64,000 bases of DNA from Octopus sinensis (Eukaryota). The notes beneath the pieces are model-generated. The model did no database searches, was not told the origin of the DNA, and saw nothing but the letters and a program-made list of their open reading frames with translations. The stretch's first letter is position 1. Every line of letters begins with the position of its first letter. Shown one piece after another: positions 9,943 to 59,824 of the stretch. The position numbers were made by a program, and so were the translations under genes. The DNA is taken from NCBI RefSeq assembly GCF_006345805.1, contig NC_043002.1, positions 58,776,001 through 58,840,000 on the forward strand, written 5' to 3'.

Positions 9943-10095
9943 CTTGCCAGAGGTCCCAGTGGTAGACTGTAGAGTCTGTTATGATAGCAATGATGTCAGA
10001 GTTCACCCAAGTCCAGAAAATAACTCGTTCCAACATGTCTGTTTTACTGACCAAAACTTTGTTGCCGACATTAAATACTTCAAAACGAAGATTTG
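9943..10095 (-). CDS. Exon (153 nt, phase 1/1) of the clathrin heavy chain-like gene
   Basis: Acceptor ctttctttctttcttcccag, then ca+NLRFEVFNVGNKVLVSKTDMLERVIFWTWVNSDIIAIITDSTVYHWDLWQ+g, then donor GTGAGC. Matches CHC QIFN...VTFWKWI...VTDNAVYHW. The phase fits the preceding exon (g+ca = Ala). Confidence 0.93.
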
Positions 10096-12178
10096 CTGGG
10101 AAGAAAGAAAGAAAGAAAGCATGAAAACTACAAAAAAATTATAAAAAATTATAAAAATGTAATATGACAAAAACAAACTGCTTCCATTATGACTGAATTT
10201 AAAAACATCCTTGACTATAATGGTATACAGCAGTGGTTCTCAACCATTATTGTTTTACCTGTCGAGCCCTTTGATTCCAACTTTCCTCAGGTGCTATTTT
10301 AAACATAGCCATTTCAAATTTCTTAAATCCTGTTATATTTCTATAATTGAATATTCTTTTCTACACTAGGTACAACACCAGAAATTTTTAGGGAGGGGCC
10401 AGTCGATTAGATCAAACCTAGTATGCAACTGATACTTAATTTATCAACCCTGATAGGATGAAATGTAAAGTCGACCTCGGCGGAATTTGAACTCAGAACG
10501 CAAAGACAGACGAAATACAGCTAAGCATTTTACCTGGCGTGCTAATGTTTCTGCCAGCTCGCTGCCTTCCTATAATAAAATATTATTAGGAATTGTATAA
10601 CAGAAAGTTAATAAAATATTTTGTGTATGGGAGAAAATATAACCTATATCTTTTATGTTTTATTTGTTTTAGTCATTTCACTGTGGCCATGCTGGAGCAC
10701 TGCTTCGAAGAATTCTTTGTTGACTGACTTGACCCCACCCAACTATTTATTTTTGCTTGTTTTTGCTTTTTAAGCCTGGTGCTTATTCTATCAGTTACTT
10801 TTGCCAAACTGCTAAGTTACAGGGGCGTAAAAACACCAACACCAGTTGTCAAGCAGTGGGGGGGGGGATAAAGACACAAAAACATGGCCGCAGTAAAAAG
10901 ACAAACAAGTAAAAGAATAAATCTGTGGTTTATTAACGAAATCAAATCAATCTCAATTGGGTGGTTAAAATAAGGCAGGTGATAGCCAGGTAAAATGTAT
11001 TTAAACTAAAAAAACATAGAAATTATTCTGTGTCTACAACAACAGGTCAGACAACAGTCACAGAATAGTGATTTCCGATAATATATAGAATATCATAGAA
11101 ATATCAATTTATGACTCAAAAAAGAAAAAAAAATGTTTAGATTTCTCTACTGTAAAATTCACAGTCTATCACCAGCACCAACACCACCACTACTGCCACC
11201 ATCACCGAAAACAACATGTTTGCAAAAGTACAAGCACCACCATTCCACCACCACCTCTAACACTACCACCACAGTCAACTAATACCGCTATATACCACTG
11301 ACATTTCGTCTACCAATACTACAATCATCACCTTATATTATTACTACCACCACCACTTCTAATACAACTACTATCACCACCACTCACATCAACTTCGAAC
11401 TGATGAAAGAACCTCTTAGTGGTCATTTGGCCTGCTAGAAATAACAGCCAAATTTTCCTCAAATTACACACCCACATTAGGAAAGAGGACACATTGGATA
11501 TGATGTGGTCATGGCTGTAATGCCTTTTGATTATATGGCCGTTTGGTCACAACAGAACAGGGGCTAAACAACAGCAACACTACTAACACCACTAATACAA
11601 CTAACTTTAACATGTACAAGCAGCAGCACCACCACCACCACCACAGCTAACAGAACCACCACTGCTGCTACCAGTTTCAACTGCAACTGCTTCCCAAACT
11701 AGAACAATGACCCCACCAACACCAACTCCAAACAGCAATGCCTCAAACATACAAGAACAACAACGCTAACATCACAACCATCATCACAACAACAAAATAC
11801 TTTAAACTAATAAACGAAAAGTTTGAGATTCTTAATATTTGCTCTCTCTCTCTCTCTCTCACTCATTAATTCCCTTTTTCTGTCTCTCTCGCTTTCTCCA
11901 TCTCTGTATCCTTAACTGCATTAGAGAGATTTACATTATTGATTACAAGTGGAGAGTAATACAATAGAGGAATGTTCTGACCACAAAGAAAAACTATCTG
12001 ATGCAGAACACACGGCTATTTCAGGCAATATTTGTCTTTGATCTCTCTTTCTCTCCCTCTCTCTCTCTCTCTCTTTCTGTGAAGGGCCAACAGGTCTGAT
12101 ATGGAACTGTAGCATTGGCTTGCACTTGTACAACTGCAGGGCAGGTAGAAGATTTCAAAGATTGTATAGGTTCTTGTT

Positions 12179-12217
<39 letters not shown>

Positions 12218-12327
12218 AACATACACCACATAGGTACATATGCAAATACGTGTATGGGTATGTGCATCTGTGTGTATGTATATGTGTGTGTATATGAATT
12301 GGTGTGTGTCCATGTGTGAGTGTGTGC

Positions 12328-12362
<35 letters not shown>

Positions 12363-12393
12363 TATATATGCACACATACTTGTGCTGGTATGA

Positions 12394-12440
<47 letters not shown>

Positions 12441-13295
12441 TTTGTACCGATGAGTGTGTGTGTGTTTGAGAAATAGGGAGAGAAAAAAATAATGTATCAC
12501 TATAGAAGATTATATCTCTCAGAAAGCACATAGCTTTTGTCGGAGCTATGAAAAGTAGACATTGGAACACTGAAGAACATGTCTGTGCACATGTACATGT
12601 GTGTGTGTGTGTGTATTTATAGTGTGCACATAGATAGTTCATTTATTCATTTTTTTTTTGTGACTATATGCGAAGTGTTTGCATTTGCAGGGGTGTGTGG
12701 AATGGGTCTATTTGTAGATGTGCTTCTGTATGAGAATATGTTGCTTGAACAGGGTTTGCGAATGGAAGTGAGACGCTTGAGGTTGCGTGGCTTTTGATGG
12801 TGAAGAGGTTGGCTTAGCAAAGCCTTTAACAGACAAATTCCACTGGGCATTACCTGCTGGTTGTAAAAACACACAAACAGTGGTGAAGCTGTAACACTCC
12901 CTTTAGAGTTATTTCTGAACTCCATCTATACCAAATGGTTGTTGAGCCAAGTCTGTGAATTTGTTGCAATCTTAATACTCCACTTACACCTAAACCATTT
13001 TTGTTACCAGACTTTCGTCGGAATATACTGTCAGCATCTTAATTAATTTCGAAAATAATGAAGAATACAGTAAAATAACTTTGTCATTGTTAAGCTGGTA
13101 TTTGAAATATAAATCAACATAGAATTCTGATGGCAGGTTTTAATTCAGATAATTTTTAAAACAGGAAATCAAAAATCATAGAACCAGAGGCAGTCTCAGA
13201 TAGATTGGTACCAGAAATGTTAAGCATGTGAGTTCAGCTGTAATCAAATAGCTTAGAGAGAGAGAGGATCTACTCCATCACATTTACATGATAGA

Positions 13296-13630
13296 TAGTG
13301 GTTCTCATCCAGGGTCCATATAAGAATTGGAGGTAGGGGTGGGGGCATGCAACAAAAACAGTAAATTAGGGATCCAAAACAGTATTTTAAGGGCCCCTGA
13401 AAAAATTTTGCTTTATGTGTATGTTGGTTTGTGTTGTAAGAAACAGCTATGTTTCTTTCTCCAACATTTTACATAATTCAATCTATACAAGTTAATGTGT
13501 GAAAAACAAAATTGAATTTTGAAAGAAGTATCTATAAAACTAGTTTTTAAACATCAAATGGCCATAGGGTCTACCAGAATAAAATAATTGTCAAAGGGGT
13601 CCATAGATTAAAAATGGCTGAGAACCCCTG
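13296..13630. mobile_element. hAT-type MITE
   Basis: Ends tagtggttctcatcc and tggctgagaacccctg match the CAGTGGTTCTCAACC TIR family seen at 10231, 52022-52042 and 54728. Confidence 0.6.
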
Positions 13631-14509
13631 CCGTAAGTGGTTCCCTGTGATCTTAATGAGTAACATGACCATTTACATTTTGATAAAAAGAATGAATTAA
13701 ACCAATGAATCTCAGACTCCATTGCCTGGCTAGTTGATAGGTCATTTACTCATCTCTTTGAGAAGTTTCTCTGCAACAAAATATTACAGTCAGTACTGTT
13801 GCACATTGTACACATCAGTAATCTTAATCTAAAGCTGTTTCCATGGTGTATATAAATTTACTGCTTTGGTCTATCTTTGGAGCATTCCAAAATCCAAATA
13901 ATCTACAACTTATAGAAATTATATCCCACCAAATAATTTGAACTCAAGACCACTGAACTAGAACACCAATGCTATATCCATTCAGTCATTTTGATTCTAC
14001 TCACCTACAGCCATATATTGGTGAAGAATTAACAAGACAGGATCATTGCTATGGATACAGAATAATGGTTGGGTTACTTCCTGTGGTATTCTTAGATGCT
14101 CTACAGATTTTTTTATTGATAGGTCGTTATTTCCCTTGTTGGAAATTGATTACAATAAATGTTTGTCTTCAGGCATGCATGGAGAAGGAGGCTTTGCTGT
14201 GAGATTCCCTGTGGTACTGCAGAACTTGGATATTGATGTGCAATGCTCATTGTGATATCCCTTCATCTATGGATGATAGTACCTGGATAGCAGTCTAGTG
14301 TTGGTCATTGCCCTTTAATATGAATCCACTCTAACCAGCTAAGAAGGCATTCCACTTCCTTTCTTTTCTTCCTAGGATCACAAATAACATGTGACCAACC
14401 AGCCAGCCACCAATCAACTTAACTCAATAAACCAACCCCCGACATCAAATATTTCTTATTCAGTGACTTATCATTATTAACCTTGAGGATTAAAAACATC
14501 ATTCACTCT

Positions 14510-14680
14510 GCAAGGCAGCAAGCTAGCAGAATCGTTAGCATGCCGGGCGAAATGCTCAGCAGTATTTCATCTGTCTTTACATTCTGAGTTCAAATTCCGT
14601 TGAGTTCGACTTTGCCGTTCATCCTTTTGGGGTCAATAAATTAGGTACCAGTTGCGTACTGGAGTCGATCTAATCGACTT
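14510..14680 (+). mobile_element. Nin/Deu-core tRNA-SINE
   Basis: aaggcagcaagctagcagaa...gagttcaaattcc...ttcatccttttggggtcaataaattaggtaccag. Confidence 0.8.
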
Positions 14681-14774
14681 TTGAAACAAACCTGCCTGAG
14701 ATCACCCTTGATGCTATGATACAAACTTCTTGTTGTAAAGTGATCTAAAGTAAATCCTTCCATCAAAATATTCT

Positions 14775-15155
14775 TTTATTCTTTTACTCGTTTCAGTCAT
14801 TTGACTGGGGTCATGCTGGAGCACTGCCATTTAGTCGAAGAAACTGACCCCTGGACTTATTCTTTGTAAGCCTGGTACTTATTTTATTGGTCTCTTCTGC
14901 AGAACTGCTAAGTTATCGGGACGTAAACACACCAACATTGGTTGTCAAGCAATGGTGAGGGGGGTGGGCAAACACAGACACTAAGACACACGCATAAACA
15001 CAGACATATATATATACAACGGGCTTCTTTTAGTTTCCATCTACCAAATCTGCTCACAAGGTTTTGGCCGACCCAAGGCTATAGCAGACGACACTTGCCC
15101 ATGATGCCACACAATGGGACTGAACCCGGAACCATGTGGTTGGGAAGCAAGCTTC
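14775..15155 (-). mobile_element. tRNA-derived SINE family A (the most abundant SINE here)
   Basis: Homologous to the near-consensus copy at 36470-36880. Confidence 0.85.
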
Positions 15156-15744
15156 GCGTCTGCTAATTTATGTTGTGAACATCAGCTTAATAATGACAGT
15201 TACTAGGACTAAATTTTTCATTATTTTTGAAATTACTTAGTGAAGGAAAAACATTTGGAATTTGGTGGTAGTGGTAGTAGTGGTGGTGGACTATGTGAGA
15301 GAATTTATGCGTTATCTTTCTCTCGGTGATAGACTAGAAGCATTTCTATTGATAAAAATATATCATATATCTTTTAGCTTTTACATGTTTTCAGTGATTG
15401 GACTGTGGCCATGCTAAGGCACTGCTTTGAAAGGTTTAATCAACAAATCATTCCCAATCCTTATTTTTTTGTTTTACGTCTGGTACTCATTCTCTTTTGT
15501 CAGACCACTAGGTTATGGGGATGTAAACAAACCAACATTGTCAAATAGTGGGGGTAGGAACAACACAAACACATACATATATATCTGATACCTCCACACA
15601 GTTTTTTCTGCTACCAAATTTGCAAGGCAACCTGGGACTATAGCAGAAGACATTGACCCAAGGTGCCAAGCAATGGAACTGAAACAGAAACCATAAGATT
15701 GCAAAGCCAGCTTCTAAACTATACAGACATGCCCATGCTGATCC

Positions 15745-16160
15745 TCTTAGTCTTTTACATGCTTCAGTCATTTGATTGTGACCATACTGGAGCACCACCT
15801 TCAAGGGTTTTAGTTGAAGAAATTGATCCCAGGATTTATTCATTGCAAGCTTAGTACTTTTTCTGTCGGTTCCTTTTGCCAAACCAGTAAGCTATGAGGA
15901 CGTAAACACACCAACACTGGTTTTCACGTGATGGTGGGGAGGGGGACAAACACAGACACAAAGACACACATACATATACACACACATTTACACAGATATA
16001 CACACACACAAGCACACACATATGACAGGCTTCTTTCAGTTTCTGTCTACCAAATTCACTTGCAAGGCTTTGGTTAGCCCGAGGCTATAGTAGAAGGCAC
16101 TAACCCAAGATGCCACACAGTGGGACTGAACCCGGAACTATGTGGTTGGGAAGTAAGCTT
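15745..16160 (-). mobile_element. SINE family A
   Basis: Same body with an internal (CA)n spacer; head at about 16160. Confidence 0.8.
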
Positions 16161-16181
16161 CTTACCACACAGCCACATGCC

Positions 16182-16255
<74 letters not shown>

Positions 16256-17339
16256 CGCAAACACTAACTATATTGCCAACAGCAGATCTGTTGGCATGAT
16301 GTTACTCAGTTTTAATTGCAAAATGAGAGCAGCACCGGAAAAAAGTAATAAATAAATAATCAAAAAGAATTATAATTTGTGTGTGCGTGTGTATGTGTGT
16401 GTATGCTTAAAGATATCTGCTTCATCATAGAAAAATCCTGATTGCATGCATTTTTAGATAAACATGTGACACAAATAATTATTTACATTTTCTACATTCA
16501 TTGGTTTTTTTTTTATGTGGCTTTTCTGTGTTTTTTTTCTTCAGAGTTAGCACAATTTACAGTTCAGTCAGTAAAAAAAAATCACATCTCATGAACCTGA
16601 TAACTTTATTGAACTCTCTCTCAGAGAGTAGCACGAAACAGATGTAACCAAATGCAGTCTTTAACATAAACATAAACCCATCCAACTCACTGTCTGTGTG
16701 TGTATGTGAGAAAGAGAGAGAGAGAGAGAGAGTGTGTATGCCTGTGTATGTGTGTGACTGTGTATGTGTGTGTGTATTTGTGTGTGATTATGTGCATGTG
16801 TGCATATGAGTGTTCAAATGTGTGTGAAGGTGTGTGTGTGTATGTGTAGGTGAGTGTTCGAATGTCTGTGTGAGTGTGTGCCTGCATGTGGGTGGTGTAT
16901 GTGTGAGTGTGTATGAAGGTGTGTGTGTGTGTGCGTCTGTGTGTGAACTAAGTGAGCAACATCCTATGATAGGAATGGGTGGGTATATAATTCTGTAAAG
17001 GTGAGTGAGTAAAAAAAAAACACACAGAAAACCACAAAAACAAACCTCACCAGTGCCTGGTATCTCTATCCACGAGACATTTCCGGGACAACTTTAACAA
17101 AAACCAGTAACCCTATTTGAAATGTCTACACTTAGTTACTTTGGTTGTTCTACAAAATGTGACAACATAATTTACTTTAAAGTGATAGCATGTTGTCAAC
17201 TTAATGTTGCAGTCCCATAAAAGGGGAGAATGCTATGGTTATTTAGCCCTAGGAAACGCCATTTATTGTTGAACTTGACACATTTCCTGTGTCGTGTTTT
17301 CAAAGTGGAGACAAGCACCTCCACCCAGCAAAGCCAGCA

Positions 17340-17382
17340 TCCAGAGACTAGTTTCAGAGTCATTGCTCATCATCAGTCTGGA
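17340..17382 (-). ncRNA. Minimal type-I hammerhead ribozyme motif (Penelope-like pLTR type)
   Basis: Minus strand reads TCCAGA-CTGATGA-tgag caatga ctct-GAA-ACTAGT-C-TCTGGA: perfect 6-bp stem I, intact core, palindromic stem III, GUC triplet. The stem II junction is imperfect. Confidence 0.78.
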
Positions 17383-17475
17383 GTAGCATGGCTTGCTAGC
17401 TGTCGATGCCTAACTGCCTTTGAAAATACATGTATTTCGAGTGAAATACATTCACTGATTTTTGAAAATAGAAGT

Positions 17476-17552
17476 AATATATTTCTAAATCTCTGAGATT
17501 TATCGTGCTGCTACTGCATCATAAATCTCTCTGTGAGATTTAGAAATATATT
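17476..17552. repeat. Short nested palindrome / hairpin
   Basis: aatatatttctaaatctc ... gagatttagaaatatatt (18-bp arms) with inner gagatttat/ataaatctc. Confidence 0.8.
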
Positions 17553-19639
17553 ATTTTTATAATTTACTCTGTTTGGATATTTGGCAAAGACTTGTTCTAG
17601 CAGAAAGGAAATGTAGTTTCCCATTCAATCCACTGCAGACCCACCAACCCTAACATTTTTTTTTCTTTTGCAAAAGATGTTGGAGATGTCTGATCAGTCA
17701 ACCCTTCCCTGTTCTATTCTACCCAGTAAATGCTCTTCTCTTTCTCTCTCTCTCTCTTTCTCTCCTCATTTAATATCCATTTTTCTATGGAATTTATTGA
17801 GGCAAATTTTTCTATGGTCAGATTCCTTTCCTGTCATCAACCCTCACCTGCTTCCAGACATGTTTTCATGGATGAGTGGAAACAAAGGATAATGCTTGTC
17901 CATAAGATGCTCTACTCCATCAATTGTCTCCCCCCACCACCAACATTTCATCCCTTAACACTCATCACTTCCTCTGTCACCTGAGAGCAGAAAAGGCACA
18001 TACTACACACCCCTGGCTTTCTCAGTTACCTTTCGTCCCCCCCCAGTTACCATCTCCCCCAACCTGCCTACTGTCTCCACCAATCACCTTCTCTCCTTTC
18101 TCTATCATCAACTCCTCACTTAACTGCTATCACTCTCAATGCTCTCTACTACAACCTCTTCCCTTCAGCCTCTCCTATCTCTCTCAATATTTCTCTCCAT
18201 CATTTGCTACAGTCACCCCATCCTGCCCACTCTATATCGCCACCCTCTATATCGCCCACCTATTCTCACCACCCTCAATGTCCCTTGAGGGCATGTCCTG
18301 GTACATCCCTGTCATCATCTCTCTCACTCTCACTTCCTTTATCTTACACTCCAACTTGCTTTCCTTTGTTTTCTGGGGTATCCAAGTGGCTACTCTTCAG
18401 CGAGGCACCTATACCTGTCCCCTCTATACCTTAAATCTCTCAACTGGCACAAAGCTGCACCACCTCAATGCTACTCCCCCACCTTCTAGTTGAGGGGTTC
18501 TTGTCTTGCAAAGTACTTGATGACCCTGATGATGATGGTGCCACATGAAAAGCACTGGTGTGAGTGCCATGTAAAAAGCATCCAGTGAAGTAGTTGGCAT
18601 TATGAAGGGCACCCAGCCATAGAGACCATGCCAAAACAAACTATGGAACTTGGTGTGGCCCCTGACCATACCAGCTCCTGTCAAACCATCCAACCCATGC
18701 CAGCATAGAAATAAATACAAGGCTTCAAAAAAAGCAAAGTATCTGGGTCGGTTCATTTGACTAAAAATTCTTCTAGGTAGTGCCCCAGCTTGGCCATAGT
18801 CTAATGACTGAAACAAGTAAAATATAAAAGATATTCTGATAGCATTAAACACCAAAACTTCAATTAAACTCTGCTCCCGTTTTCAAAGGCTGACCTACAT
18901 TTATGGTGCCCTGTGTGGGGGAAGAAACAAATGTAACCCTATCATGTGACGCCAGTGAGACCAAAGTGCCACTCTTGGCTAAGTTGGCATATTAGTAATA
19001 ACCTGATGGAATTATCCCTTCAGGAAATGTTTGAAATATCAATAGGAAATGTGGAGAGCAGCAGAGAAAGTGCATTTTAGATGAAAACTAACTGCACTTC
19101 ACATTCATTCGACCAATGTCAAAATGGAGAAATGATTGTCAAATTAAACAATAATGAGGATGACATGATAAAATAACAAATAAACAAACAAAAAAAAAAG
19201 AAATATTTTTCACTGTCATTTCAGCATTAACCCTTTTATTATCATATTTCTGTTGAAATGCACTCACTTTGTTTCAATCAATTTGGAAAATGATAAAGAA
19301 TTTTGTAAAATAACCATAATTATTTAGCTGGTGCTTGGAACAAAGCAACATGAGGTTTTGATTGAAGGTTTTAATTTAGATCACAACCCTTTTGTTACAA
19401 CATTTCTATATTTGTTTGATAAATTTTGAAAACTACTGAAGAATTTAGTAAAATAATTTTGTCATTATTCATCTAGTGCTGATGTTTGGAAATTAAATTA
19501 ACATGAAATTTTAATGGAAGTTTATATCACAGAACATAGGTTGGTACTGAAAGAGCTAACAGATAGTGTTTGGGAGGTTGTCTGGCAGTAAAAGAATTCT
19601 TTAACCATTCCATTTCAATATCTAAAATTTCAGAACTAC

Positions 19640-20055
19640 ACCAATGCCAATGCTGCCTCACTGGCACCCGTGTAAAAAGCACCATTTGAGCATGGCTGAC
19701 GCTAGTGCCACCTGACTGGCACCCATACTAGTGGCACATAAAAAGCACTATTCAAGTGTAGCCGATGCCAGTGCTGTTTGACTGGCTCCCATGCTAGTGG
19801 CATGTAAAAAAGCACCCTTTCAACGTGGCTGATGCCAGTACTGCTTGACTGGCTCCTGTGCTGGTGGCATGTAAAAATCATCCACTACACTCTTAGAGTG
19901 GTTGACGTTAGGAAGGGCATCCAGCTGTAGAAACCATGCCAGATCAGACTGGAGCCTGCAGTCAACCCATGCAGTCAACCCTGCAGTCAACCCAAGCCGT
20001 CCAACCCATGCCAGCATGGAAAGTGGACATTAAACGACGATGATGATGATGATGA
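19640..20055 (+). mobile_element. SINE-like family C, (GAT)n-tailed
   Basis: Repeated gtggcacgtaaaaagcac blocks, gtggttgacgttaggaagggcatccagctgtagaaac core and tail ...cattaaacgacgatgatgat. Confidence 0.8.
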
Positions 20056-22029
20056 TACAAAGCATGCTCACTTAGAACTTAATCTTAATTTCTTTAAAAA
20101 TTAAGAAAACCCTTTTTTTAAAAATTCATACATTGGTGCAAGAGTAGTAGTTTAGTAAGAAGCCTGCTTCCCAACCACATGATCCCAGGTTCAATTCTAC
20201 TACATGACACTTTCAGCAAGTGTCTTCTACGACAGCCCTGAACTGATCAAAGCCTTGTGAGTGGATTTGGCAGATTTAAATAGAAAGAAGCTTACCATGT
20301 GTGTGTGTGTGTGTGTGTGTGTGTCCTTGTCTTGACATTGCATGGTAGTTGTAAATGAGTGTCACTGTCATACAAGCAGTGTCAATTATTTCCAGACATC
20401 AGATTAATGTGACAAAGTATTGTCCAGGCCTTGCCTAACACCGCAAACACACCATCTGAGTCACTAACCTGCCCCACTTCAAACCCTTTCAAAGAAACAA
20501 ATGTTCCAGTACCATTCCCGGCAATACAATACAGTACCAGTGATATGGTAGACACATACATACTTAAACCTCTTAATCCCAAGAGCTGCTACTTGAACCA
20601 CTAAGCTTGCTCTTTGCAATAATTGCTACAAATATCCTGGCTAAGATTAAGCTAACTTCACTCTCCATTGTTAACAAACAACATCAATTAACTACAAGCA
20701 GCTGATTTGAAATGTCAAATATTCTTTTAGATCTCTCTCTCTTCTGTCTCTTGAGTGTTGTTATAACATTCTACTTATGGCTGACTGGCTAACTGTCTCA
20801 TTCAAAGTGAAGATTATGATATACACCTTATGAAAAACACTAATTACTCTTTCTCTCTAACATCACTTGTAATCCTTTGGCAAAGGGCCCTTTTTCTCTC
20901 TTTCTCTCTCTTAAATAAAATGGCATTTTTACCGCAGGGCTTCCGAGTACATGTAATGCAAATGCTAACTGTTTTGCTAAACCCCTAAGGTGCTTTATAT
21001 CCTTCATCCTTAGCTGATTTTATGGTACAATATTAACCCTTTACAATATTAACCAAGGCAGTGAGCTAACAGAATTGTTAGCACATCGGGTGAAATGCTT
21101 ACCGGTATTTCGTCTGTCTTTACAATCTGAGTTCAAATTCTGCCAAGGTTGACTTTGCCTTTCATTCTTTCAAGGTCAATAAATTAAGTACCAGTTGCAT
21201 ACTGGGATAAATCTAATCGACTAGCCCCTTCCCCCAAAACATTTCAGGCCTTGTGCCTAGATTAAAAAAGAATATTAACCCTTTAGTATTTAACTCTTTC
21301 AAGCTGGGTGGTACAAATAAAGTACCACTTATTTGTATCAGTTTAATGAGTGGTGGTACATATTGAAACTTAAAATTCTTTTCACTGCAGGGTTGGTAGC
21401 TCAGAAAACATACCACTTCATCTATCAGTGAATCAGAAGCTACCCTTACATCTGGCAACAATATCTGCAACACAAATGAAATATTTTTTCACTTGAATCC
21501 ATTTTTTGTGCCAAAGGTCAGTCGAGGAAAAAACAAGAGTACAAATTTTTGTTATAAATTTTTGCCCTTCTAGAGTTTTCTTTTTTCTTATTTTTGGCAT
21601 ATCTATCTCACTCCTGAAACACTTAAACCTGCCATGTCCAGCCCAAATATTCCACCTGTTTTATGTTCAAACCAGTCAGATCTGGTCTATCACACCTATC
21701 ATACAAGGTCATTCTAAAAATAAGTATTCACATCATTAAAATTTCAAAGCTATGAGAGAGATAATGTATGATTAATTGGAAACAGCATGATTAAATAAGT
21801 ATTAGATCTGATAGAGTAATTTAAATTCTAAAGGCTTAATGGAAGATACACTTCCTCCTTGACAGGCTGCTTTTGCCAAAACAAATAAGATTTCTCAATT
21901 AATGAGTACCGCTTCACTGCAGTGAATTGAATTGAGGTGATGCACAATAAAAAGCTAATGCCAACACAGCCAATGAAATGCTTGCAATAGATTTGAATTT
22001 GCAGCATATGAGTAAATAGACCAATACTT

Positions 22030-22200: not shown

Positions 22201-22207
<7 letters not shown>

Positions 22208-47012: not shown

Positions 47013-47053
<41 letters not shown>

Positions 47054-47118: not shown

Positions 47119-47161
<43 letters not shown>

Positions 47162-48569: not shown

Positions 48570-48870
48570 ACCATGTAAAAAGCACCTGTACTGGTAACAA
48601 CATAAAAAGCACCTGTACTGGCACCACGTAAAAAGCACATTACTGGTACCACATAAAAAGCACTTGTTCTGGTACCACATAAAAAGCACCTGTGCTGGTG
48701 CCACGTAAAAAGCACCTGTACTGGTGCCACATAAAAAGCACCTGTATTGGTGCCACATAAAAAAGCACCTGTGCTGGTGCCAAATAAAAAGCACCTGTAC
48801 TGGTACCACATAAAAAGCACCTGTACTGGTACCACATAAAAAGCACCTGTACCGGTGCCATGTAAAAAGC
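48570..48870 (+). repeat. Minisatellite, about 26-bp unit cctgtactggtaccacataaaaagca, about 11 copies, inside a family C-related element
   Basis: Continues into the family C core and (GAT)n tail at about 48900-49075. Confidence 0.9.
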
Positions 48871-49196
48871 AATGGTGCTGGGTAAAAAACACTTGTTGAA
48901 AGCTATGTTGAAAGCATCCAGTACACTCTTTAAAGTGATTGGCACAAGGAAGGGTATCCAGCCATAGAAACTGTGTCAAAGCAGACAAATGGAGCCTGAT
49001 GTAGCTCCAGTTTGTCAGCAGCTGTTGAACCATCAAACTCATGCCAGCATGGAAAGCAGACATTAAATGATGATGATTAATAATATAATCTTAGGCTGGT
49101 AGACTTTATTTTTAATAACATTCAGCTCAATTGACTACACAAAGAACTCTTCTTTCATTTTTACTTTTCTATGGAAACTTTCGACAATAGCTATAT

Positions 49197-49345
49197 ACAG
49201 GGTGTGGTGAATAAATTGTTGTCTAAATTACACAAAAATGAAAATAATACTGACATCTCATTTTAACAGATATATTTACCAAAATTACATTAAAATATTT
49301 TGAAATACTAAGGAGTAAATTTATTCAATAAAAGCGCCAACATGT
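49197..49345 (-). mobile_element. Terminal fragment of a Tc1/mariner element
   Basis: TA-cagggtgtggtgaataaattgttgtctaaatt TIR-like end after a TA target. Confidence 0.55.
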
Positions 49346-49596
49346 GTAAATTGACAATGATTGAAACAGTGGCAGCACAGTCATGAGCGATGAATTGACT
49401 TCTTTAAACCAAGCCATAGAAATATAATTCTTTTGATGCATTATTCTCAATGGATTTAAAAAATAATATAAGACCTATTCTTTTTCCAAAGACAAAACAA
49501 ATATAACAAATCTAACGCCCTTCCTCCCTCCCTCCCTCACACACATACTTTATGGTATAGTTTATGACTTAATTCTGTACAAGAATATATATATAT

Positions 49597-49863
49597 ACAT
49601 TATTTACATTTGACGGATATTTGTCATTATCTTGTTTGTTGTTAGCATAACGTTTCAGTTGATATACCCTCCAGCCTTCATCAGGTGTCTTGGGGAAATT
49701 TTGAACCTGGCTTCTCATTCCTAAGATATTTTTTGATGTTGTTGTTATTATTATTATTATTATTACTATTATTATTATTATTATTATTCAGGTCACTGCC
49801 TGGAATCGAACTCGGAATCTTGGGGTTAATAGCCCATGCTCTTAACCACTATGCCATATGCCC
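49597..49863 (-). mobile_element. Hammerhead-tailed tRNA-SINE (family H) with an inverted terminal piece at 49864-49912
   Basis: Head tggcatagtgg (A box) and gagttcgattcca (B box); hammerhead-like block at 49644-49689. Confidence 0.85.
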
Positions 49864-51552
49864 ATCAAATGTAAATAATGTACATAATTCCTCATCTCTT
49901 AAATATAGAACTGAAGAATATATATATTCAGCCTTGCTGTAAACCAGTTCTGGGAGGATAATGAACTCTGCTATTTTAAATCAATATGTAAGAGGACTTG
50001 ACGAAGTACTGTCAGGTATTTAATCATTTGATCAAACAACTCTGATCACCTCTGCCCTTCCATATACATTCACATCTCCAACACCATCTATTTCTCTTTA
50101 TCTTTCTCCCTATCTTTTTCCCACCTTCCTTGTCCTACTGGGGTAGCTGAGTATCTCCTCTATAATAAGACAGCTTTGTCTGTCTCTCTGTCATACACTA
50201 GCCTCTCACCTGTTCCATTCTTTCTCTCAACCAAGAGGTCTTTGTTTTGCAAGTTACTCAGTGACCCCACCAGTGCTAGTGCTGGTGCCATGTAAAAAGG
50301 GTCTGTGCTGATGCTATATAAAAAAGTACCCAGAACTATCTGTAAAGTCGTTGGCATTTTAGGAAGGGTAACTGGCTGTAGAAACCAAACCAAAACAGAC
50401 AACTGGAGTATGCAGCAGCTCTCCAGCTTGCTAGCTCCAGTCAAAAATGTCCAACCCATGCCAGCATGGAAAAGAGATGTTAAATGAAGATGATGAGGAT
50501 ATAATGAAATAAAACAGAAAACTATTTTCATATGTCACTGTACCATGAAAGAGAAAGATAAAATTGGGATAAAGCCCTATAAATTTCCATGTTGGAGTTA
50601 AGGAAAGAGTGGTGAGGATTTGTTGGCTCAAAAGAATACAGGAGAAGAGTGGTGAGGTGGGTGTAAATAAGGAACAAACTGAGTCTGTTTTAATGTGTTT
50701 AAAGAAGGAACTATGATGAGATTAAGGTTGCAGATAGTGGGCCTCTAAAGGCTGAAGCTTGAGACGAGTGACAATATACTGTATTGTAATGTGTCTAACC
50801 CACAACAACAAAGAATGAACATTAAGACATTGGTGATGATGGTGGTGGTGATGTTGATGATGTTTGTGGCAGTAGGGGTGATAATGATGATGGTTGTGAT
50901 GGTGGTAATAGTGGTGATGATGATGATGGTGGTTGTGATGAAGCTGATGATTGTGGTGGTGGTGGTGACGACAACAATGATGGTGGTGTTCACGACAATG
51001 ATGATGGTGCAGATGATGATAGTGATAATAAAAATAGAAAAACACTAGATAAGACTCAGTCATGCATCCTTGAATCCACATTATATTAACTCTGTTATTC
51101 ATTTATTCACCGTTACTATTATTAACTCTATACTTTGTTTTGTTATTTTATTTAACATTTTTCTCAAAAACTCGCTACATTTTCCACAAACTTTGCTTAA
51201 CTTACTTGGTAAGCCTTCATTCAGAACAGTAACAGGACAGTTACTATTTTGAAGTTTTAACTGACAGAAATAGTTCAAAGCGAAATAAAATCTACAAAAA
51301 AGCAAACTAAAAGTCAGCTCTAAGTACTCACTGTTGTTTGAGATGTAATGATTTGTGCCTGGTTAGAGATTAAGCAGAAACAGAGTAAATAGTAGACTGA
51401 TGGCTCTCAACTAAGGTCCGTAGGACCTTTGGGAGTTCACATAAGATTTTGTGGTTAAAATTTATGTGTGATAAACTGGTTGTACTTCCACAATAGAAAA
51501 AATATTTTAACAACCTTTTTTTATATATTTCCTAATAATAGTTGACTACAAG

Positions 51553-51977
51553 CAGTGGCGGACTGGGTCTAAAAACATTGGTAGCTAGGAGACTAAGGGG
51601 GCCCACCTGCAACTACAAGGGGGCCCGCCCACAACTACTAGGGTGCCCACCTGCTACTACAAAGGAGCCCACCTGCAACTACAAAGGGGGCCCATCCGCA
51701 ACTACAAGGAGGCCCACACACAACTACAAGGGGGTGCTCACCCACAACAACAATGCTATCATTTACTTTTTTTTTGTTAAAAATATTCTTTACAACTGTC
51801 TACAAACACAGCCAGGCTGAAATAACCAATGCATTCTTCCAGGAGTGAATAAAAAAATTCTCAAACTTGAGGGGGTGGGCCCCTTAGATACTAACATGGG
51901 GCCCCACATATGGATTCTTATGATGCAGGAGCCCACTTAGCATTGGGCAAGCTGGCAACCTGGCCAGTCTGCCACTG
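51553..51977. mobile_element. hAT-type MITE carrying a 22-24 bp internal tandem array
   Basis: TIR cagtggcggactgg / ccagtctgccactg; 8-bp TSD actacaag / attacaat (6/8); about 6-7 units of gggcccacctgcaactacaagg. Confidence 0.75.
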
Positions 51978-52261
51978 ATTACAATTACTGAGCAAAATAG
52001 GAATCATAGGGGTCCATAGGTAAAAAATGGTTGAGAACCACTGGTGGAGACTAATAATGATGCATGTATGTGTGCGTGCATGTATATGAATATATGAGAT
52101 GGAGAGAGAGTGTCCCATAACCAGGGGGTCCTTAACCAATGGGTCATGGAACATTTGATCCCAAGTTGCACAGAAAGAATAAATTTGTAAATTTTATTTC
52201 TATTTTATTGATTACTGTAGTCTACAGGATTATTTTTTTTTTTTGCATTATATATATGTAT

Positions 52262-52640
52262 TACATCATTATCATCGTTTAACGCCCGTTTTCCATGCTG
52301 GCATGGGTTGGACAGTTTGACTGGGGACTGGAGAGCCAGTGGCTGCACCAGGCTCCAATCTTGTCTGGCAATGTATCTCCAGTTGGGTGCCCTTCCTAAT
52401 GCCAACCATCCTGAGAGCGTAATGGGAGCTTTTTATGTGCCACCAGCACAGGAGCCAGTCAGGCGACACTGGCATCAGCTACGTTCAGATGGTGCTTTTT
52501 ATGTGCTACCGGCACAGGAGCCAGTCGGGTGGGGGGCTAACATCAACTACATTTAGATGGTGCTTTTTATGTACCACCGGCATGGGGAGCCAGTCAGGCA
52601 GCACTGACAATGACCCACACATGAATGGTGCTTATTGCAT
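52262..52640 (-). mobile_element. SINE-like family C
   Basis: catcattatcatcgtttaacgccc...cccttcctaatgccaacc...gtgcttttt repeats. Confidence 0.8.
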
Positions 52641-53972
52641 GCCACCAGCACGTGAGCATTACATGTGTAATAATTATTATTATGTACACCATTACATTTT
52701 CTTATGTCTGTGATCCCTGGATTCATGAGAAGATTTCTTCTATGAAATCTGTCCAGGGTGCACAAAAGGCTGGGGTCAGTTACCATAACCCATTAGGTTG
52801 TAAGATCACCACTTGAAGACCTTGTCTTCATATAATGTTTATAAAGGGAACACAGCTAGCCAGAGGTTATAACTTGTAGCAGTGATCTGAAACCAAACTA
52901 CAAGCTAACCAGTCATGCATCACAACTGAACTACAATAGTTACCTGGGATCAATATAATCCTCTATTCCCTTTTCCTCTTTCCCCACATTTCCAGCCTTG
53001 TACCTTCATGAGAAAATTATACTGTGCTACTTCTTGGTGCCAGCTTACATTACTGATCTGTGCTACACCAATGTGCATGGACACAATGTAGGGATAGTGA
53101 CAGCTTATGAACCACGACAGATTCAGTCGACTGTCTAACATCCTAGTAATTAAACTACCTATGGCTTACACACACACACACACGTGCTTTCACACAAAGC
53201 GCATGGATGGCCCAGTTTATGGGTTATTGGACAACCAGTCAAAGTTCAATAGGTTGTGTCCTTGTTACTAAAAACTCATTGCCAAGATAGTTCACTCTTA
53301 TGTGAGCCTAAGAATTCATAGAAATGAAGCAATGAGAGAGAGAGAGAGCGGAGAGGAGCAGTGAGAGTGAGAAGAAGAAAAATTAGGATATAATGATAAT
53401 GAGAGGAAGGTGAATTAGTGTTGAGTGTAAGGTAGGGAGGGGGTCATTCGAAGGTCAGTGAATTTGTTATAAGACTCTCAATCATAGTATTCAAATTCAT
53501 GTCTGTACAAATGCATATACATGAATAGATGAAAGGAAAACCTAGGAAGCCAAATGTTCACACACATACACACACACCTGCCACTCCATATACAGCTACA
53601 CACACACACACACACACACATACCAGCAGACATGTGCCTGCACACTCATATTCACTTGTGTGCAAACACTGTACACACACACAACAAACACACCCCTGCA
53701 CAAACACATACACACAAACACTCCCCTGCACAGACACACACACACATACACACACATACAAACACACAGACAAATGTACAAGACTATACATTCTCTTGAC
53801 ACATAGTAGTAAATATAATCTGTCACGACTTTGCAGTATCATTTTCTATAGCCTTGGTCTGACCCATAATGAAATTGAGTAGATGGAAACTGTGTGGAAG
53901 CCTTTCATATGGATTGTACCAGTGATTTAAAGGTCCAACTTTGTCACACACCTTATCATGTCAGTTCTACCA

Positions 53973-54238
53973 GGCATATAGCGTAGTTTTTAAGAGCATG
54001 GGCTACTAATCCCAAGATTCCGAGTTCAATTCCAGGCAGTAACCCAAATAATAATGATAATAACATCAAAAAATACCTTAGGAATGAGAACCCAGGTTCG
54101 AAATTTCCCCAAGACACCTGATGAAGGCTGAAGGGTATATCAGCTGAATCGTTGTGTTAATAACAAACAAGATGAGGACAAATATCCATCAAATGTAAAT
54201 AATGTATGTAATTCCTCATCTTTTAAATATAGAACTGT
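53973..54238 (+). mobile_element. Hammerhead-tailed tRNA-SINE (family H), full copy
   Basis: ggcatatagcgtag...gagttcaattccagg head; gacac-ctgatgaa-ggctg...cagct-gaatc-gtt-gtgtt at 54113-54158. Confidence 0.85.
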
Positions 54239-54444
54239 ACACATTCAAGGTACACATATCTGTGGAATACTCAACAACTTCCAATGCTAATTCAAGGAAC
54301 CTAATAATTCAGTTGATTGAACACTGGAACACTTGTGGTTGGAGATTCTAAGGTTTGAATTTTTATCTATGATATAAATATACACATATACAAATACAGG
54401 AATGACAAAAACATATCTATACACATAAAAGGTGTGTGTATGTA

Positions 54445-54708
54445 TATGCTCAGATGTGTATATGCTCAAATGTGTGTATGCTCAGATGTTATATGCTCAG
54501 ATGTGAATAGGCTCAGATGTGCATATGCTCAGATGTGTATATGCTCAAATTTGCATATGCTCAGATGTGAATATGCTCAAATGTGCATATGCTCAGATGT
54601 GCATATGCTCAAGTATGTAGATGCTCAGATGTGCATATGCTCAGGTGTGCATATGCTCAGATGTGCATATGTTCAGATGTGTATATGCACAGATGTGCAT
54701 ATGCATAC
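54445..54708 (+). repeat. 16-bp tandem repeat atatgctcagatgtgc, about 16 copies
   Basis: Contiguous units with point variants. Confidence 0.9.
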
Positions 54709-54727
54709 AAATTTCCAATGTCTAAAA

Positions 54728-56212
54728 CAGTGGTTCTCAACCATTTTTTATCAATGGACCCTATGATTACTTTTTTATTCCGGTGGAACTCCATCGCCAT
54801 CTGATGTTTAACCCTTAAACATTTAAACCGGCCAAATCTCGTCTAAATATTCTTCCTGTTTTATGTTCAAACTTGACAGATCAGACCTCTCACATCCAGT
54901 GGTGTAGCTAGGGTAAACTGTGCCCGGTGCAAGCTTCAAAAATGACCCCCCACCCACCACCAATTACAAAATCCACAATATTTTATAGTACTTATTTGTT
55001 ACAAGTAATTAATATTTTAAAGCAATATTTTAGCAACAAATACTTTGCCAGAGTTAATTTACCTGCTGGTTTGGTACAGCCTTTAATTCAAAATCTATTT
55101 TTTTAATGTTTACTTTTACGAAACCACCTTATTTTAACCATTTAATGCACCAGCTTCCCCGATTGAAACATTAAAAAACCTAATGTGTGAAATGAGATAT
55201 AATAAAAAATATACAATTGTTTAATGTCTCATCTTTCTTGCTTTTGGTGAGGCACCTTCCCTTCAATCAGTACCTGGGGCACGTGCCCCCCCCCTTTACA
55301 CTACTGCTCACACTTAACCTACAATGTCTAAACATAAACAGTCACATCATTGAACTGAGAAAGCTAAAAGATAATTCATGGCTAATTAAGCCCACAACAT
55401 CAGTTGACGTAAATTTACATGTGCTGTGTACTCGCTTTGAATCAGATGACAAAAATATATGCAGCCCTATCTGCTGCAGTTTTCTGCCTGTTTGTCTACC
55501 AGTTGAAATAAATATTCGCTATCACTCTTGGAATTGATAACAGAGGCTACCATGCAACGAATCTGACAGGTTTGTTAGACTCTTCATGTAAAAATTTCCA
55601 ACTCAGTCTAAGACTTCCTCACCATAATAGCATAAAAGCAGCAGTTTTGGCAGTTACACTACCATTTCCTATCAAATTCATAAACCTTCTGCAAATTCTT
55701 CTGGTCCTTCACGAAATTTAGTCACATCCAGCCATGACAGTTTCGTTGAATTTATGGTCTTCACAGTGATTACAGTTTACATAAATAAACAGTGCATGCT
55801 TTAAAGCATTGACATAAAAATATGCCAAACTGTTGTTGTGTGCTAATTGCTGATCTCAGCTGAGATGATTACCGTTAGTGCAACGTAGTTGCCTGATAAA
55901 AACCGTTGCCATGGGATTAAAAATAGTGTGAATACATAAGTATTACATTTGACAGAACAATAAATTAGTTTTCTAGATACTGCTTTAAAAATTCCCATCT
56001 TGTTCACACATTCACTTGTGTAGGTTGAACAATGTAAAATGTTAGGGAAAAAAACACAGCTATTTCTTGCAATAAATTCATTGACAGCAAAACTTTCTCA
56101 TGGACCCTTGGAATAATACTGTGGACCCAATTTACTATTTTGCTCGTGTGTACCCCAAAAAATTCAATGTGGACCTCCAGGGAGCCAAACAGACATTAGT
56201 TGAGAACAACTA
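54728..56212 (-). mobile_element. Degenerate hAT (Charlie-like) DNA transposon with nested MITEs
   Basis: TIR cagtggttctcaac / gttgagaacaacta; TSD gtctaaaa / gtctaaag; weak transposase trace (..TVKTINS..) on the minus strand. Confidence 0.72.
54897..55306. mobile_element. Nested hAT-type MITE
   Basis: cagtggtgtag...tacactactg termini; TSD ctcacatc / ctcacact. Confidence 0.7.
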
Positions 56213-56454
56213 GTCTAAAGGTAGAAAAACATCTCTCCTCTGATGAAGGCCTCAGGGAGAAATGCAGGAAATTCTTCTAATGGCATAATACAAACTTAAA
56301 AAGTAAAAACCTAACTTGAAACTCTATGGAAGGTTATTGCAGATGTATGTAAAATTAGATAAATTGATGGTTGTCTTAAACATATACTCTTCAGAGATGG
56401 TGAATTACATCAAGTGGAAAATCTTGAAGTGCAAAACTCGTTTTAATAGTATAT

Positions 56455-56790
56455 ATATAAGGGTGGTGAAGGTGACCCCCACCCTTGGTCATGAATGACC
56501 ATGGGATTGAACCTAGAAAGTTACCCTCTGAGGCACAAGTCTGGGCAAGGTTGTTTCTGGAAGACCAGCAGTAACCCATGCATATCAGCCTCCCCTCTCC
56601 ATGCCACTGATGTTATCCAAGGGAAAGGCAAAGGGGGATGATACAGCTTGGCACCAGTGATGTTGCAACTCATTTCTACAGCTGAGTGAACTGGAGCAAT
56701 GTGAAATACATTGTCTTGCTCAAGAACACAACATGCAGCCCGGTCCAGGAAACAAACTCACAACCTCACGATTGTAAGCTTAATGCTCTA
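56455..56790 (-). mobile_element. SINE family B
   Basis: Reverse complement of the 7058 and 62885 body. Confidence 0.8.
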
Positions 56791-57109
56791 ACCACCAAAC
56801 CATGCTCCTTCACTTTATATATATATATATACAATGGGCTTCTATACATTCTCTACCAAATTCACTCATGGGGCATTGGTTGGTATCTTTTCTTTGCTTA
56901 CTTACTTCAGTCATTAGACTGTGGCCAGGTTGGGGCACTACCATAAAAAAATTTAATCAAACAAATCAATCCCCAGCACTTATTTTCTTTTTGAAGCCGG
57001 GTCCTTATTTAATCAGTCTTTTTTGCCACACCACTAAGTTGCAGAGATGTAAACACACCTACACTGTTGTCAAGCAGTGGTGACAGACAAACACAGATAC
57101 ACACAAAAT

Positions 57110-57163
<54 letters not shown>

Positions 57164-57289
57164 TCAAAGAAATTAATTATAGAAGGAACACATCTAGGCA
57201 ATCAATACAAATTCCAAAACATAATTTAAAGTACACAACGAAATAAATCAGGGAACCATCCTAATGAGGGGGGCATTATGTTTTTGTAT

Positions 57290-58550
57290 GATTGGCATCC
57301 GTTAGTCTCAAAAGACTATGGATCTGCGCCTTGGATTGGATTGGATTGGTGTTGCAGCATCTCTTGTGACTGACAAGGCCAATGTGTGAGTGACAGTCAC
57401 AGCTGCAATGGTCGCAAATGTGGTTGGCCGGCTGGTCGTTTGTTGGTGGTTTGGTCTTCCTGTGTCTCCATCCCTCAGGATGGTACTCAGCATCTATCTC
57501 CAGCAGGAATGGTCTTTTGCCATGTTCTCCCAGGTTTTGGTAGTCATACTCATGGCTTCCATGCCACATCTGCACACATACTTGAAACAGAGATGTGGTC
57601 GTCTGCAAGCACATCTGCTGGAAGTTAGCTCCCAATACAGTATATCTCTCAGTAACTTCCCATCAGGCATCCGGTGCATGTGCCCCAGCCAGCGGAGATG
57701 GTGTTGCTGATGTCCACTTGACCCCAAGAATACTCTGAAGGTTGTGCAGATGGAAGGTATTCAGGCAGTGCTCTTGTCTGGCGGAAAGGCACCAGGTCTC
57801 ACCGCTGTGTAGCAAGGTACTGAGAACACATACTTTATAGACTGTGAATTTGGTGGATCTAGTCAGCTTGCCATTTAACCACATTTTTTTAGCTAGTCTG
57901 GCGACGGTCGAAGCTGCTAAACCAATTCTCTTGTTCAGCTCTTGGTCAAGTGTGAGGCCATTTGTAATTGTTGAGCCAAGGTTGAGTGGTTGTCGATGGT
58001 AATGATGGAGGGATTCTGTTGGATGATTGTTAAGCTGAAGGCACAGCACACCCAGTTGGGATTGTCCATCATTGTTTGCAGTTTCAGTTCTGAATGAGCT
58101 ACAAGAGCTGCATCATCGGCAAACAGTATCTCTCATACATAAATCCTGTGGATTTTGGTCTTAACATTGAGCTTGTCAGATTGAATAGTTTACTGTCTGA
58201 GCCTGTGTGGAGGCAAACACCGTCATTTTGCATACCAAATGCATACTTCAGCATAACAGCAAAGTAGATGTTGAACCGGATAGGAGCAAGCACGCATTCC
58301 TGTTTTACCCCAGGTTGAACGTCAAAGGGTTTTGAGGTGTTTCCGTTGAATTGTACTGTGGCCTTCATGTACAAATGGAAAGACTCAAGGATGCGGGGCA
58401 GTTGAGGAGAATACCCAATCTTCCCAACAACTTGGAACAACCCATTCCTATTCACCATGTCGATTGCCTTCATCAAGTCAATTAATGCAATGTAGAGAGG
58501 TTGGTTCTGTTCCCTACATTTCTCTTGTAACTGGTTCCCAAGGTTGTCAA
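57290..58550 (-). mobile_element. RTE-clade LINE RT remnant
   Basis: QEKCREQNQPLYIALIDL, GVKQECVLAP, ILFADDAAL and VLSTLLHSGETW; multiple frameshifts. Confidence 0.9.
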
Positions 58551-59713
58551 GCCAAGGTGTGGGGTGGAGATAAGCTCCCACTACCTAAAAAAATTCCCTT
58601 ATGGCATGCGTCTCAAAGAGCCTCTGACAGCCAAGTCCAACTCCTGGCTTTCTCATGTGGCCTATTATGTGGAACTGTTACTACTGACAGGAGAAGTGGC
58701 AAGGGCGAGTTACTGGCACCCCAAAATCAGTGCTTCGGGTAGATGGGACCCATTAGTCCCAGAAGGCAACCCATCTAAGGCTTGGGGAGAAAACCCTGAG
58801 GAGAAATCCAGAGCTGGAGTCCTGAAGGTAGTTTGAAGTTGTACTCAACCTTATTCTGATACTCCTGTGACACACCGATCCCAAGCTGTACTGGCCTCTG
58901 CCTTTCCCTTGGATGTTTTCGTATATGGAATACTTAAAACGCCATTTATACATTTAATGTACCCCTGAAACGGCCATAGATGATATCCTTTAACCCCGAG
59001 TTTGTATATTTATCTAATGTAATAATATTTATCAAATCTATTTACCTCTGAATTCTTAAATTTTCAACTCTCATCCGATAACTCATATAAACATCAAATA
59101 CTTAACTGATTTGAACGATTCCTTTTGGAATCCTTTACCTTGGATTTTTGTCTCTTTATTTGTCACTACTCCATTCAGTATGTGAACCCAACGTACATGA
59201 TGCATAGGTTTCACATATGACTTTTAAAACATGTAATTCTACTCATTTATTTATATAAATTTATATCTATCTTTATATCATTGTGTGCTTTAAATTATGC
59301 TTTGGAAATTGTATTGATTGCCTGGATGTTCCTTCTATAATTTCTCTTACCCTTTGATTTAGCTCACAATGAGCATTTCTTAATACAGCCCTTATATTGT
59401 GAATTATATTTAAGAACATACTTTATAAGAAAATGTAATTGTATATACATATTCATACACACACCATACAGTTGGCTATGGGAAGCAAACTTCGAAGCAT
59501 ACAGCCAAACAACTTGAACAAGATGCTGGCAGTGGGACTGAACCCAGAACCACTTGGTTGCAAAGTGATCGCCTTAACCACACAGCCATGCCTGCACTAT
59601 TATAAATATAATTTTGTAAAATGAAGCTATTTTCTGCAGCATAGCACATCACTTGCAGTGTCAATGGTTGTCTCAAGCTACACACACACACACATTGTAT
59701 GTATTTCACTTAC

Positions 59714-59824
59714 ATTGGACATTTTTCTGTCTCGGCCATCATGCCGTACTGCAATCCACTGATCAGAAATCATGGTGACACGTGACCAGGTCACTTGGTC
59801 GGCTGGTATTCCAAAGTTTCTAAG
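59714..59824 (-). CDS. Exon (111 nt, phase 0/0) of a divergent clathrin heavy chain-like gene, N-terminal propeller blade 1
   Basis: Minus strand: acceptor ttttctttcttttacag, then LRNFGIPADQVTWSRVTMISDQWIAVRHDGRDRKMSN, then donor GTAAGT. Aligns to clathrin heavy chain residues 15-49 ([28 protein letters not shown]...). Not in the ORF track because it has no ATG start. Confidence 0.92.

Follow-up and report, generated by a model that had tools for sequence, protein, structure and literature searches.

A 64,000-nucleotide (nt) stretch of the Octopus sinensis genome (NCBI RefSeq assembly GCF_006345805.1, contig NC_043002.1, positions 58,776,001 to 58,840,000; hereafter the window) contains three exons of a gene for a 478-amino-acid (aa) protein related to the N-terminal domain of the clathrin heavy chain (CHC). 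We are largely confident that this gene is a clathrin paralog restricted to the terminal domain, that it arose by DNA-level duplication, and that its product is most likely a monomeric peptide-binding module and not a coat subunit. The window is an internal piece of the larger gene, which lies on the minus strand; all coordinates given below are window positions.

Exons, transcripts and the encoded domain

The first-pass annotation, made from the letters alone, had proposed three exons with matching phases and 122 stop-free codons between positions 9943 and 59824. We reproduced these exons on the minus strand, and the two limits correspond exactly to the exon 4 donor and the exon 2 acceptor. 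In the direction of transcription, the gene is arranged in the window as follows:

Intron 1 (part), 59825..64000, minus strand: exon 1, encoding MAAENKRPPVTISELVQ, lies outside the window.
Exon 2, 59714..59824 (111 nt), minus strand: phase 0 to 0, residues 18-54, LRNFGIPADQVTWSRVTMISDQWIAVRHDGRDRKMSN; AG/GT splice sites, borders ttttacag/CTTAGA ... TCCAAT/gtaagt.
Intron 2, 25499..59713 (34,215 nt), minus strand: filled with repeats, with a degraded reverse transcriptase at 57276-58581.
Exon 3, 25396..25498 (103 nt), minus strand: phase 0 to 1, residues 55-88 and one base, VTVLNPREGTKIYAGSTFADSLIMNPSHPLIALK; borders tcttacag/GTCACT ... CTAAAAG/gtaggt.
Intron 3, 10096..25395 (15,300 nt), minus strand: splits the codon of A89 in phase 1.
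Exon 4, 9943..10095 (153 nt), minus strand: phase 1 to 1, residues 89-139 and one base, ANLRFEVFNVGNKVLVSKTDMLERVIFWTWVNSDIIAIITDSTVYHWDLWQ(G); borders ttcccag/CAAATC ... TGGCAAG/gtgagc.
Intron 4 (part), 1..9942, minus strand: the next exon, whose product starts GDSPPENVF..., lies outside the window.

A polypyrimidine tract with AG precedes every exon, and GTAAGT, GTAGGT or GTGAGC follows it. Joined together (phases 0, 0, 1, 1), exons 2-4 give 122 stop-free codons and one additional base. Exon 2 encodes W30 (human F27, in the W box) and H45 (human E42), two residues specific to the protein family described below, while the clathrin-box groove residues R92, E94, F96, K101 and L103 are encoded by exon 4. 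No further exons of the gene were found in the window when it was searched with human CHC and with the full Octopus protein. The whole gene spans about 175-178 kb in the assemblies of both Octopus sinensis and O. vulgaris.

The 122-aa peptide encoded by the three exons matched residues 15-132 of the clathrin heavy chain in a phmmer search of all PDB sequences (E = 6.6e-18). Smith-Waterman alignment of the peptide to the human-type CHC17 sequence P0022 yielded 39 identities in 120 columns (32.5%), the same 39 that had been counted by hand in the first pass (about 32%). P0022 is 100% identical to human CHC17 over residues 1-321. The peptide is likewise 100% identical to residues 18-139 of XP_029638280.1 / CAI9724356.1 (P0181; O. 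sinensis / O. vulgaris), a protein of 478 aa with the database name "clathrin heavy chain-like", and the O. bimaculoides homolog matches it in 120 of the 122 residues. Thereby we confirm the exon observation in every detail and far beyond chance. Two other searches with the peptide gave no result: Pfam produced no match for the 122-aa fragment alone, and a word-indexed protein search returned nothing, although the identical protein is part of the collection. The latter outcome is explained by a sensitivity gap of the index and not by an absence of homologs.

Over its full length the Octopus product is 33-35% identical to human CHC, and the similarity ends at about residue 338-351 (BLASTP). Canonical chains reach 72% identity to the human protein in a rotifer and 45-58% in fungi, plants and protists, while fragments of other animal canonical chains are 75-95% identical. 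The rotifer value of 72%, set against 33-35% for the Octopus product, bears out the earlier statement that true animal heavy chains are far more conserved than this protein.

Evidence for splicing was obtained from two Logan contigs of about 2 kb each, L001 and L002, which are free of introns and encode full-length cephalopod homologs. L002 (SRR3401912; 2004 nt) originates from a related octopod and is 90-95% identical to the window exons at the nucleotide level, whereas L001 comes from a decapodiform and shows about 76% nucleotide identity. Because the gene covers more than 170 kb and the contigs are without introns, both must represent spliced transcripts. In L002, exons 2-4 (nt 127-242, 241-343 and 342-500, respectively) abut head to tail at exactly the predicted junctions, so that both splice junctions of the first-pass annotation are present in a transcript of a related octopod. 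Both contigs contain an in-frame stop upstream of the ATG, and behind the stop codon both continue for over 500 nt of 3' untranslated region (UTR) with many further stops. Therefore, the protein really ends there.

The only Pfam domain of the 478-aa product is Clathrin_propel (41.8 bits, cut-off 21.3). The CHCR repeats (PF00637), Clathrin_H_link and TSNAXIP1_N gave no Pfam match in this product at E <= 0.1, and residues 375-478 have no similarity to the C-terminal trimerization and light-chain-binding region of CHC. We predicted the structure of Octopus residues 1-368, which align end to end with the core of the family, with AlphaFold2, using a family alignment of 17 sequences (A1). The model (predicted local distance difference test, pLDDT, 92.1; predicted template-modeling score, pTM, 0.89) consists of 28 strands followed by two C-terminal helices. 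When it was compared with the PDB by Foldseek, the top 39 matches were all clathrin terminal domains. The template-modeling (TM) score to 2xzg and other terminal domains was 0.92/0.94, the value of the first match, which had a root-mean-square deviation of 1.8 A and 33% identity; G-beta propellers scored far lower (TM 0.55). According to this model, the Octopus protein is a seven-bladed clathrin terminal-domain propeller with the first two linker helices.

Cephalopod members of the family carry about 70-135 additional aa after the aligned core, a tail that those of other phyla are without. The tail (residues ~375-478 in Octopus) is of low complexity and rich in N, T and S. In three cephalopod sequences (P0181, P0187, P0227) it ends in the conserved acidic, serine-rich stretch KVPLLLSPS(S/T)LPTIC(Y/F)EDSDS...SESDS. 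The tail could be a phosphorylation or sorting signal.

A family of short proteins and its origin

To collect homologs, 1.84 billion cluster representatives were searched exhaustively with HMMER, and cluster look-ups and further searches followed. Proteins of about 370-400 aa ranked above every canonical chain, the best match being a Physella member with 65% identity. We found models of this family in more than 40 species, mostly of 365-400 aa and ending at the same place. They are carried by lophotrochozoans (many gastropods, bivalves, a chiton and cephalopods, as well as Lingula, two nemerteans and annelids), ecdysozoans (horseshoe crabs, spiders, ticks, mites, the centipede Strigamia and Priapulus) and deuterostomes (a crinoid, a sea urchin, two hemichordates, three lampreys and two caecilians). 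None of the family matches came from insects, nematodes, teleosts or mammals, so the family may be absent from these groups; the profile search, however, overlooked several sequences of its own input alignment and is unusable for arguing absence from any lineage. Taken together, a Pfam architecture without CHCR repeats, the common end of the models in more than 40 species and the in-frame stops of the transcripts agree with the earlier proposal of a stand-alone terminal domain.

Members of the family share 33-37% identity with human CHC. Since this is lower than the identity of fungal, plant and protist canonical chains to the human protein, the family evolves much faster. We calculated a neighbor-joining tree with a simple distance correction from 358 trimmed columns, in which 26 short proteins were aligned with 32 canonical terminal domains from a wide range of eukaryotes. 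In 100 of 100 bootstraps the short proteins were monophyletic, and they stood apart from the canonical terminal domains, as expected for the separate paralog that had been postulated from the Octopus exons. Within the family, deuterostomes, ecdysozoans and lophotrochozoans branch roughly as they do in animal phylogeny, and the Octopus protein is nested among those of other molluscs.

The first-pass annotation had also considered that the gene might turn out to be the sole, fast-evolving canonical ortholog of the organism. In that case the gene model would be truncated, with the leg exons located further downstream; the window contains just three exons, and a canonical Octopus gene was not among the sequences retrieved, both of which would fit such a scenario. 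Nevertheless, we consider it extremely improbable. In two cephalopod transcripts the coding region closes with a stop codon and a 3' UTR with further stops, and models of the same length recur in more than 40 species. Lampreys and caecilians possess members of the family, and vertebrates also carry canonical CLTC. The family clade is separate from the canonical chains with full bootstrap support. Moreover, Dreissena has the short paralog, and its proteome also contains a clathrin heavy chain with CHCR repeats (PMC7148315).

Exons of family members and of a canonical gene were mapped by exact spliced translation. The Lingula gene has nine exons of 45, 156, 103, 153, 119, 168, 117, 174 and 123 nt, and the 103- and 153-nt exons of Octopus equal Lingula exons 3 and 4 in length and in phases (0/1 and 1/1). 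In the lamprey gene all intron positions are common except for one that was lost, and the counterpart of the 153-nt exon measures 150 nt. Of the five terminal-domain introns in the canonical rotifer gene, four coincide in column and phase with introns of the family, namely at human residues 14 (phase 0), 83 (phase 1), 227 (phase 0) and 323 (phase 0). Two of the four fall on exon borders within the window: the acceptor of exon 2 corresponds to the canonical CHC intron after residue 14 in phase 0, and intron 3 to the one at human residue 83/84. Because these introns are common to the short and the canonical genes, we conclude that the family goes back to a heavy-chain gene with introns that was duplicated at the DNA level. 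The family would have been inherited vertically, with its exon structure kept, at least since the bilaterian ancestor.

The window exons were further compared with L002 by the method of Nei and Gojobori. The ratio of nonsynonymous to synonymous substitution rates (dN/dS) was 0.029/0.243 = 0.12, and on this comparison the exons show purifying selection. This result bears on another explanation, a decaying duplicate or expressed pseudogene without a function of its own, which the first-pass annotation had kept in view. Strong divergence from the canonical chain (33-35% identity) would fit such a decay. Against it stand, besides the low dN/dS, a reading frame that is intact across cephalopods, an exon structure conserved from brachiopod to lamprey, 24 columns that are invariant across 17 divergent family members, and the confidence of the predicted structure. 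The gene is thus not a pseudogene on these data, and we regard the decay scenario as highly improbable.

A few public models of the family deviate from the usual length. The Plakobranchus model (P0165, 595 aa) carries a fused reverse-transcriptase fragment, and the Ixodes model (P0218, 459 aa) contains an LSm-type Pfam domain and bears the second name "U6 snRNA-associated Sm-like protein". The models of Owenia (P0015, 1087 aa, with 700 extra residues) and Sarcoptes (614 aa) have no additional Pfam domain. Those of Plakobranchus, Ixodes and Owenia look like fusions with unrelated sequence and are probably gene-prediction errors, and we rejected a real extra domain in the longer models, which show either fusion to a reverse-transcriptase fragment or no added Pfam domain. 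The gene neighbors in Lingula and lamprey (malectin, QRPTase, kinesin, ankyrin-kinase) gave no hint of function.

Ligand grooves and proposed function

We compared the ligand grooves of 37 family members with the key ligand residues of the clathrin terminal domain reported by Muenzner et al. (PMC5182127); 13 key ligand residues are listed in Table 1 of PMC8805674. In human numbering, the grooves of the family are composed as follows:

Arrestin box, almost canonical: W164 and Q192 invariant in 37/37, L183 and I194 conserved, V233 always L.
Clathrin box, partly changed: I80, F91 and K96 mostly kept, Q89 replaced by E in 26/37, K98 by L, and R64 by G or W.
W box, all four residues changed: F27 to W (30/37), Q152 to E (32/37), I154 to V (29/37) and I170 to L (36/37).

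The residues specific to the family (W27, H42, E152 and L170) are all present in Octopus as W30, H45, E158 and L176. Ten columns of the domain are conserved in both the family and the canonical chains but with different residues, and five of these ten are on the list of 13 key ligand residues. The domain differs in charge as well, being more acidic, with a median isoelectric point (pI) of 5.7 in the family versus 6.9 in canonical chains, and of 5.4 in Octopus versus 8.5 in human.

From these comparisons, the W-box pocket and the clathrin-box groove between blades 1 and 2 appear to have been remodeled in a consistent manner within the family (F27W, Q152E, I154V, I170L, Q89E and K98L), while the groove for the arrestin box is inferred to be the most conserved candidate site. 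Since the grooves are remodeled and the domain is acidic, the motif preference of the protein is probably its own and not that of clathrin. Having neither legs nor a trimerization region, the protein would form no triskelia or lattices. Most likely it would act as a "peptide-in-groove" module, soluble and monomeric, to which short linear motifs of partner proteins bind.

A special case of such a module would be a natural decoy, which the first-pass annotation had suggested beside an adaptor scaffold and in which the ligand specificity is identical to that of clathrin and the free terminal domain competes for clathrin-box, W-box and arrestin-box motifs, thereby damping the recruitment of clathrin. 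The predicted structure has the same fold with all four grooves present, the arrestin-box residues W164, L183, Q192 and I194 are canonical, and in the clathrin box I80, F91 and K96 are largely retained, all of which would suit a decoy. A protein competing for acidic clathrin-box motifs is, however, expected to keep the very contacts that are replaced here: Q89, K98, R64 and R188 have been exchanged, often for acidic or neutral residues, all four key residues of the W box are changed consistently within the family, and the Octopus domain is acidic where the human one is basic (pI 5.4 vs 8.5). Because the contact residues differ so consistently, a pure decoy is less likely, and we hold it to be a rather doubtful explanation.

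Several points weigh against reading the protein as a duplicated terminal domain that serves as a monomeric peptide-binding module. The transcripts derive from related cephalopods and not from the source species. A neighbor-joining tree based on simple distances cannot date the duplication, the position that it gives the family, outside the canonical chains of all eukaryotes, probably reflects a long-branch effect, and the set of sequences compared did not include the canonical Chc gene of Octopus itself. The enrichment of "switch" columns, conserved differently in the two groups, on ligand residues (hypergeometric p = 1e-5) was obtained with column thresholds that were chosen post hoc. The clathrin-box groove varies by lineage, with Q, E, Y or V at position 89 and K, R, N, D, Q or E at position 96, so that judging from the alignment it may not be a functional site everywhere. 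Finally, the proposed function is no more than a prediction for every member of the family. While we hold to a paralog that consists of the terminal domain and acts as a binding module, we propose more tentatively that many bilaterians may possess an ancient, selectively maintained, free-standing terminal domain with a specificity of its own, which might serve as an undescribed adaptor or trafficking component or as a regulator.

Repeats of the window and comparison with known clathrin proteins

Apart from the exons, the window contains numerous repeats. A retrotransposon of the long interspersed nuclear element (LINE) type lies on the plus strand inside intron 4. The repeats are arranged as follows:

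68-361, plus strand: the last ~97 aa of the LINE reverse-transcriptase frame, nearly unchanged.
1282-4042, plus strand: LINE-type retrotransposon in intron 4.
1509-2306, plus strand: endonuclease frame of the LINE (Exo_endo_phos_2, E = 3e-14).
2282-4042, plus strand: reverse-transcriptase frame of the LINE, 586 aa, apparently intact (RVT_1, E = 8e-37).
5702-6096, 48564-48871 and 60295-60462: dispersed element with the 26-bp minisatellite GTGCTGGTACCACATAAAAAGCACTG in 15, 12 and 6 copies, respectively.
19674-19877, 40652-40894 and 52428-52599: repeats of 66-68 bp with a similar core.
57276-58581, minus strand: broken reverse-transcriptase frames in intron 2, on the strand of the gene (58099-58581: RVT_1, E = 4e-7).

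As the end of the reverse-transcriptase frame is repeated at 68-361, a second 3' end of the same element is located just upstream of the LINE. The broken frames at 57276-58581 look like a degraded retroelement. The minisatellite gives rise to long spurious open reading frames (ORFs) on the minus strand ("FMWYQHQCFLCGTSTSAFYVVP..."), and the abundant microsatellites of the (TG)n/(CA)n type are the source of "HTHTHT" pseudo-ORFs. The G+C content is about 0.34-0.40 and rises to 0.46 over the LINE at the left end. No tRNA genes were found in the window, and no Rfam family reached its gathering score.

Among characterized proteins, the short family most resembles the terminal domain of CHC17 (CLTC, Chc; residues 1-363). 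The two share the seven-bladed propeller with the first linker helices at 33-35% identity, the introns at human residues 14, 83, 227 and 323, and the residues of the arrestin box; the family covers just what is contained in TD(1-363), the classical construct of crystallography. Unlike CHC17, with about 1675 aa, the family proteins measure about 365-400 aa (478 in Octopus), are without the distal, knee and proximal leg (CHCR) and do not match the trimerizing, light-chain-binding region. They also evolve much faster, have an acidic net charge and have replaced W-box and clathrin-box contacts.

Two other relatives deserve comparison. CHC22 (CLTCL1) is also a paralog of the canonical chain, and its terminal domain has likewise diverged in adaptor specificity. 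CHC22 is a full-length chain (about 1640 aa) that trimerizes, forms coats, is about 85% identical to CHC17 and occurs in vertebrates only, whereas the members of the short family are confined to the terminal domain, show about 34% identity and are spread across Bilateria. CLHC1 is another uncharacterized short protein with partial similarity to the clathrin heavy chain. Its defining features are Clathrin_H_link and TSNAXIP1_N, and it is not known to contain a propeller. The Octopus product is propeller-only and contains neither domain; we thus set the two apart by their domains.

Full-text literature searches found no paper on a clathrin paralog restricted to the terminal domain, in line with the "little-studied" of the first-pass annotation, and no functional study of CLHC1 was found in the literature. 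Judged by titles and abstracts, the matches to "clathrin heavy chain-like" concerned unrelated topics or human CLTCL1. For a canonical heavy chain of Octopus or squid, literature searches turned up indirect mentions only. What is known already are gene models in RefSeq and UniProt under automatic names. The family may have gone unnoticed since no member was detected in mammals, flies or nematodes and since annotation pipelines label its members "clathrin heavy chain 1/2-like".

These names have practical consequences. For proteins of 370-480 aa, "clathrin heavy chain 1", "2-like" or plain "clathrin heavy chain" are misleading and carry the risk that transcriptome and proteome work on molluscs, ticks, spiders and other animals takes these proteins for the coat subunit.

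Dozens of adaptors use the terminal domain of clathrin as the hub for recruiting the coat. A conserved protein made up of this hub alone, which would be unable to polymerize, suggests that the interaction surface has found a second use in many animals, among them lampreys and caecilians. With the W box and the clathrin box apparently rewired and the arrestin box kept, the family would also provide a natural experiment on how grooves and residues determine motif specificity.

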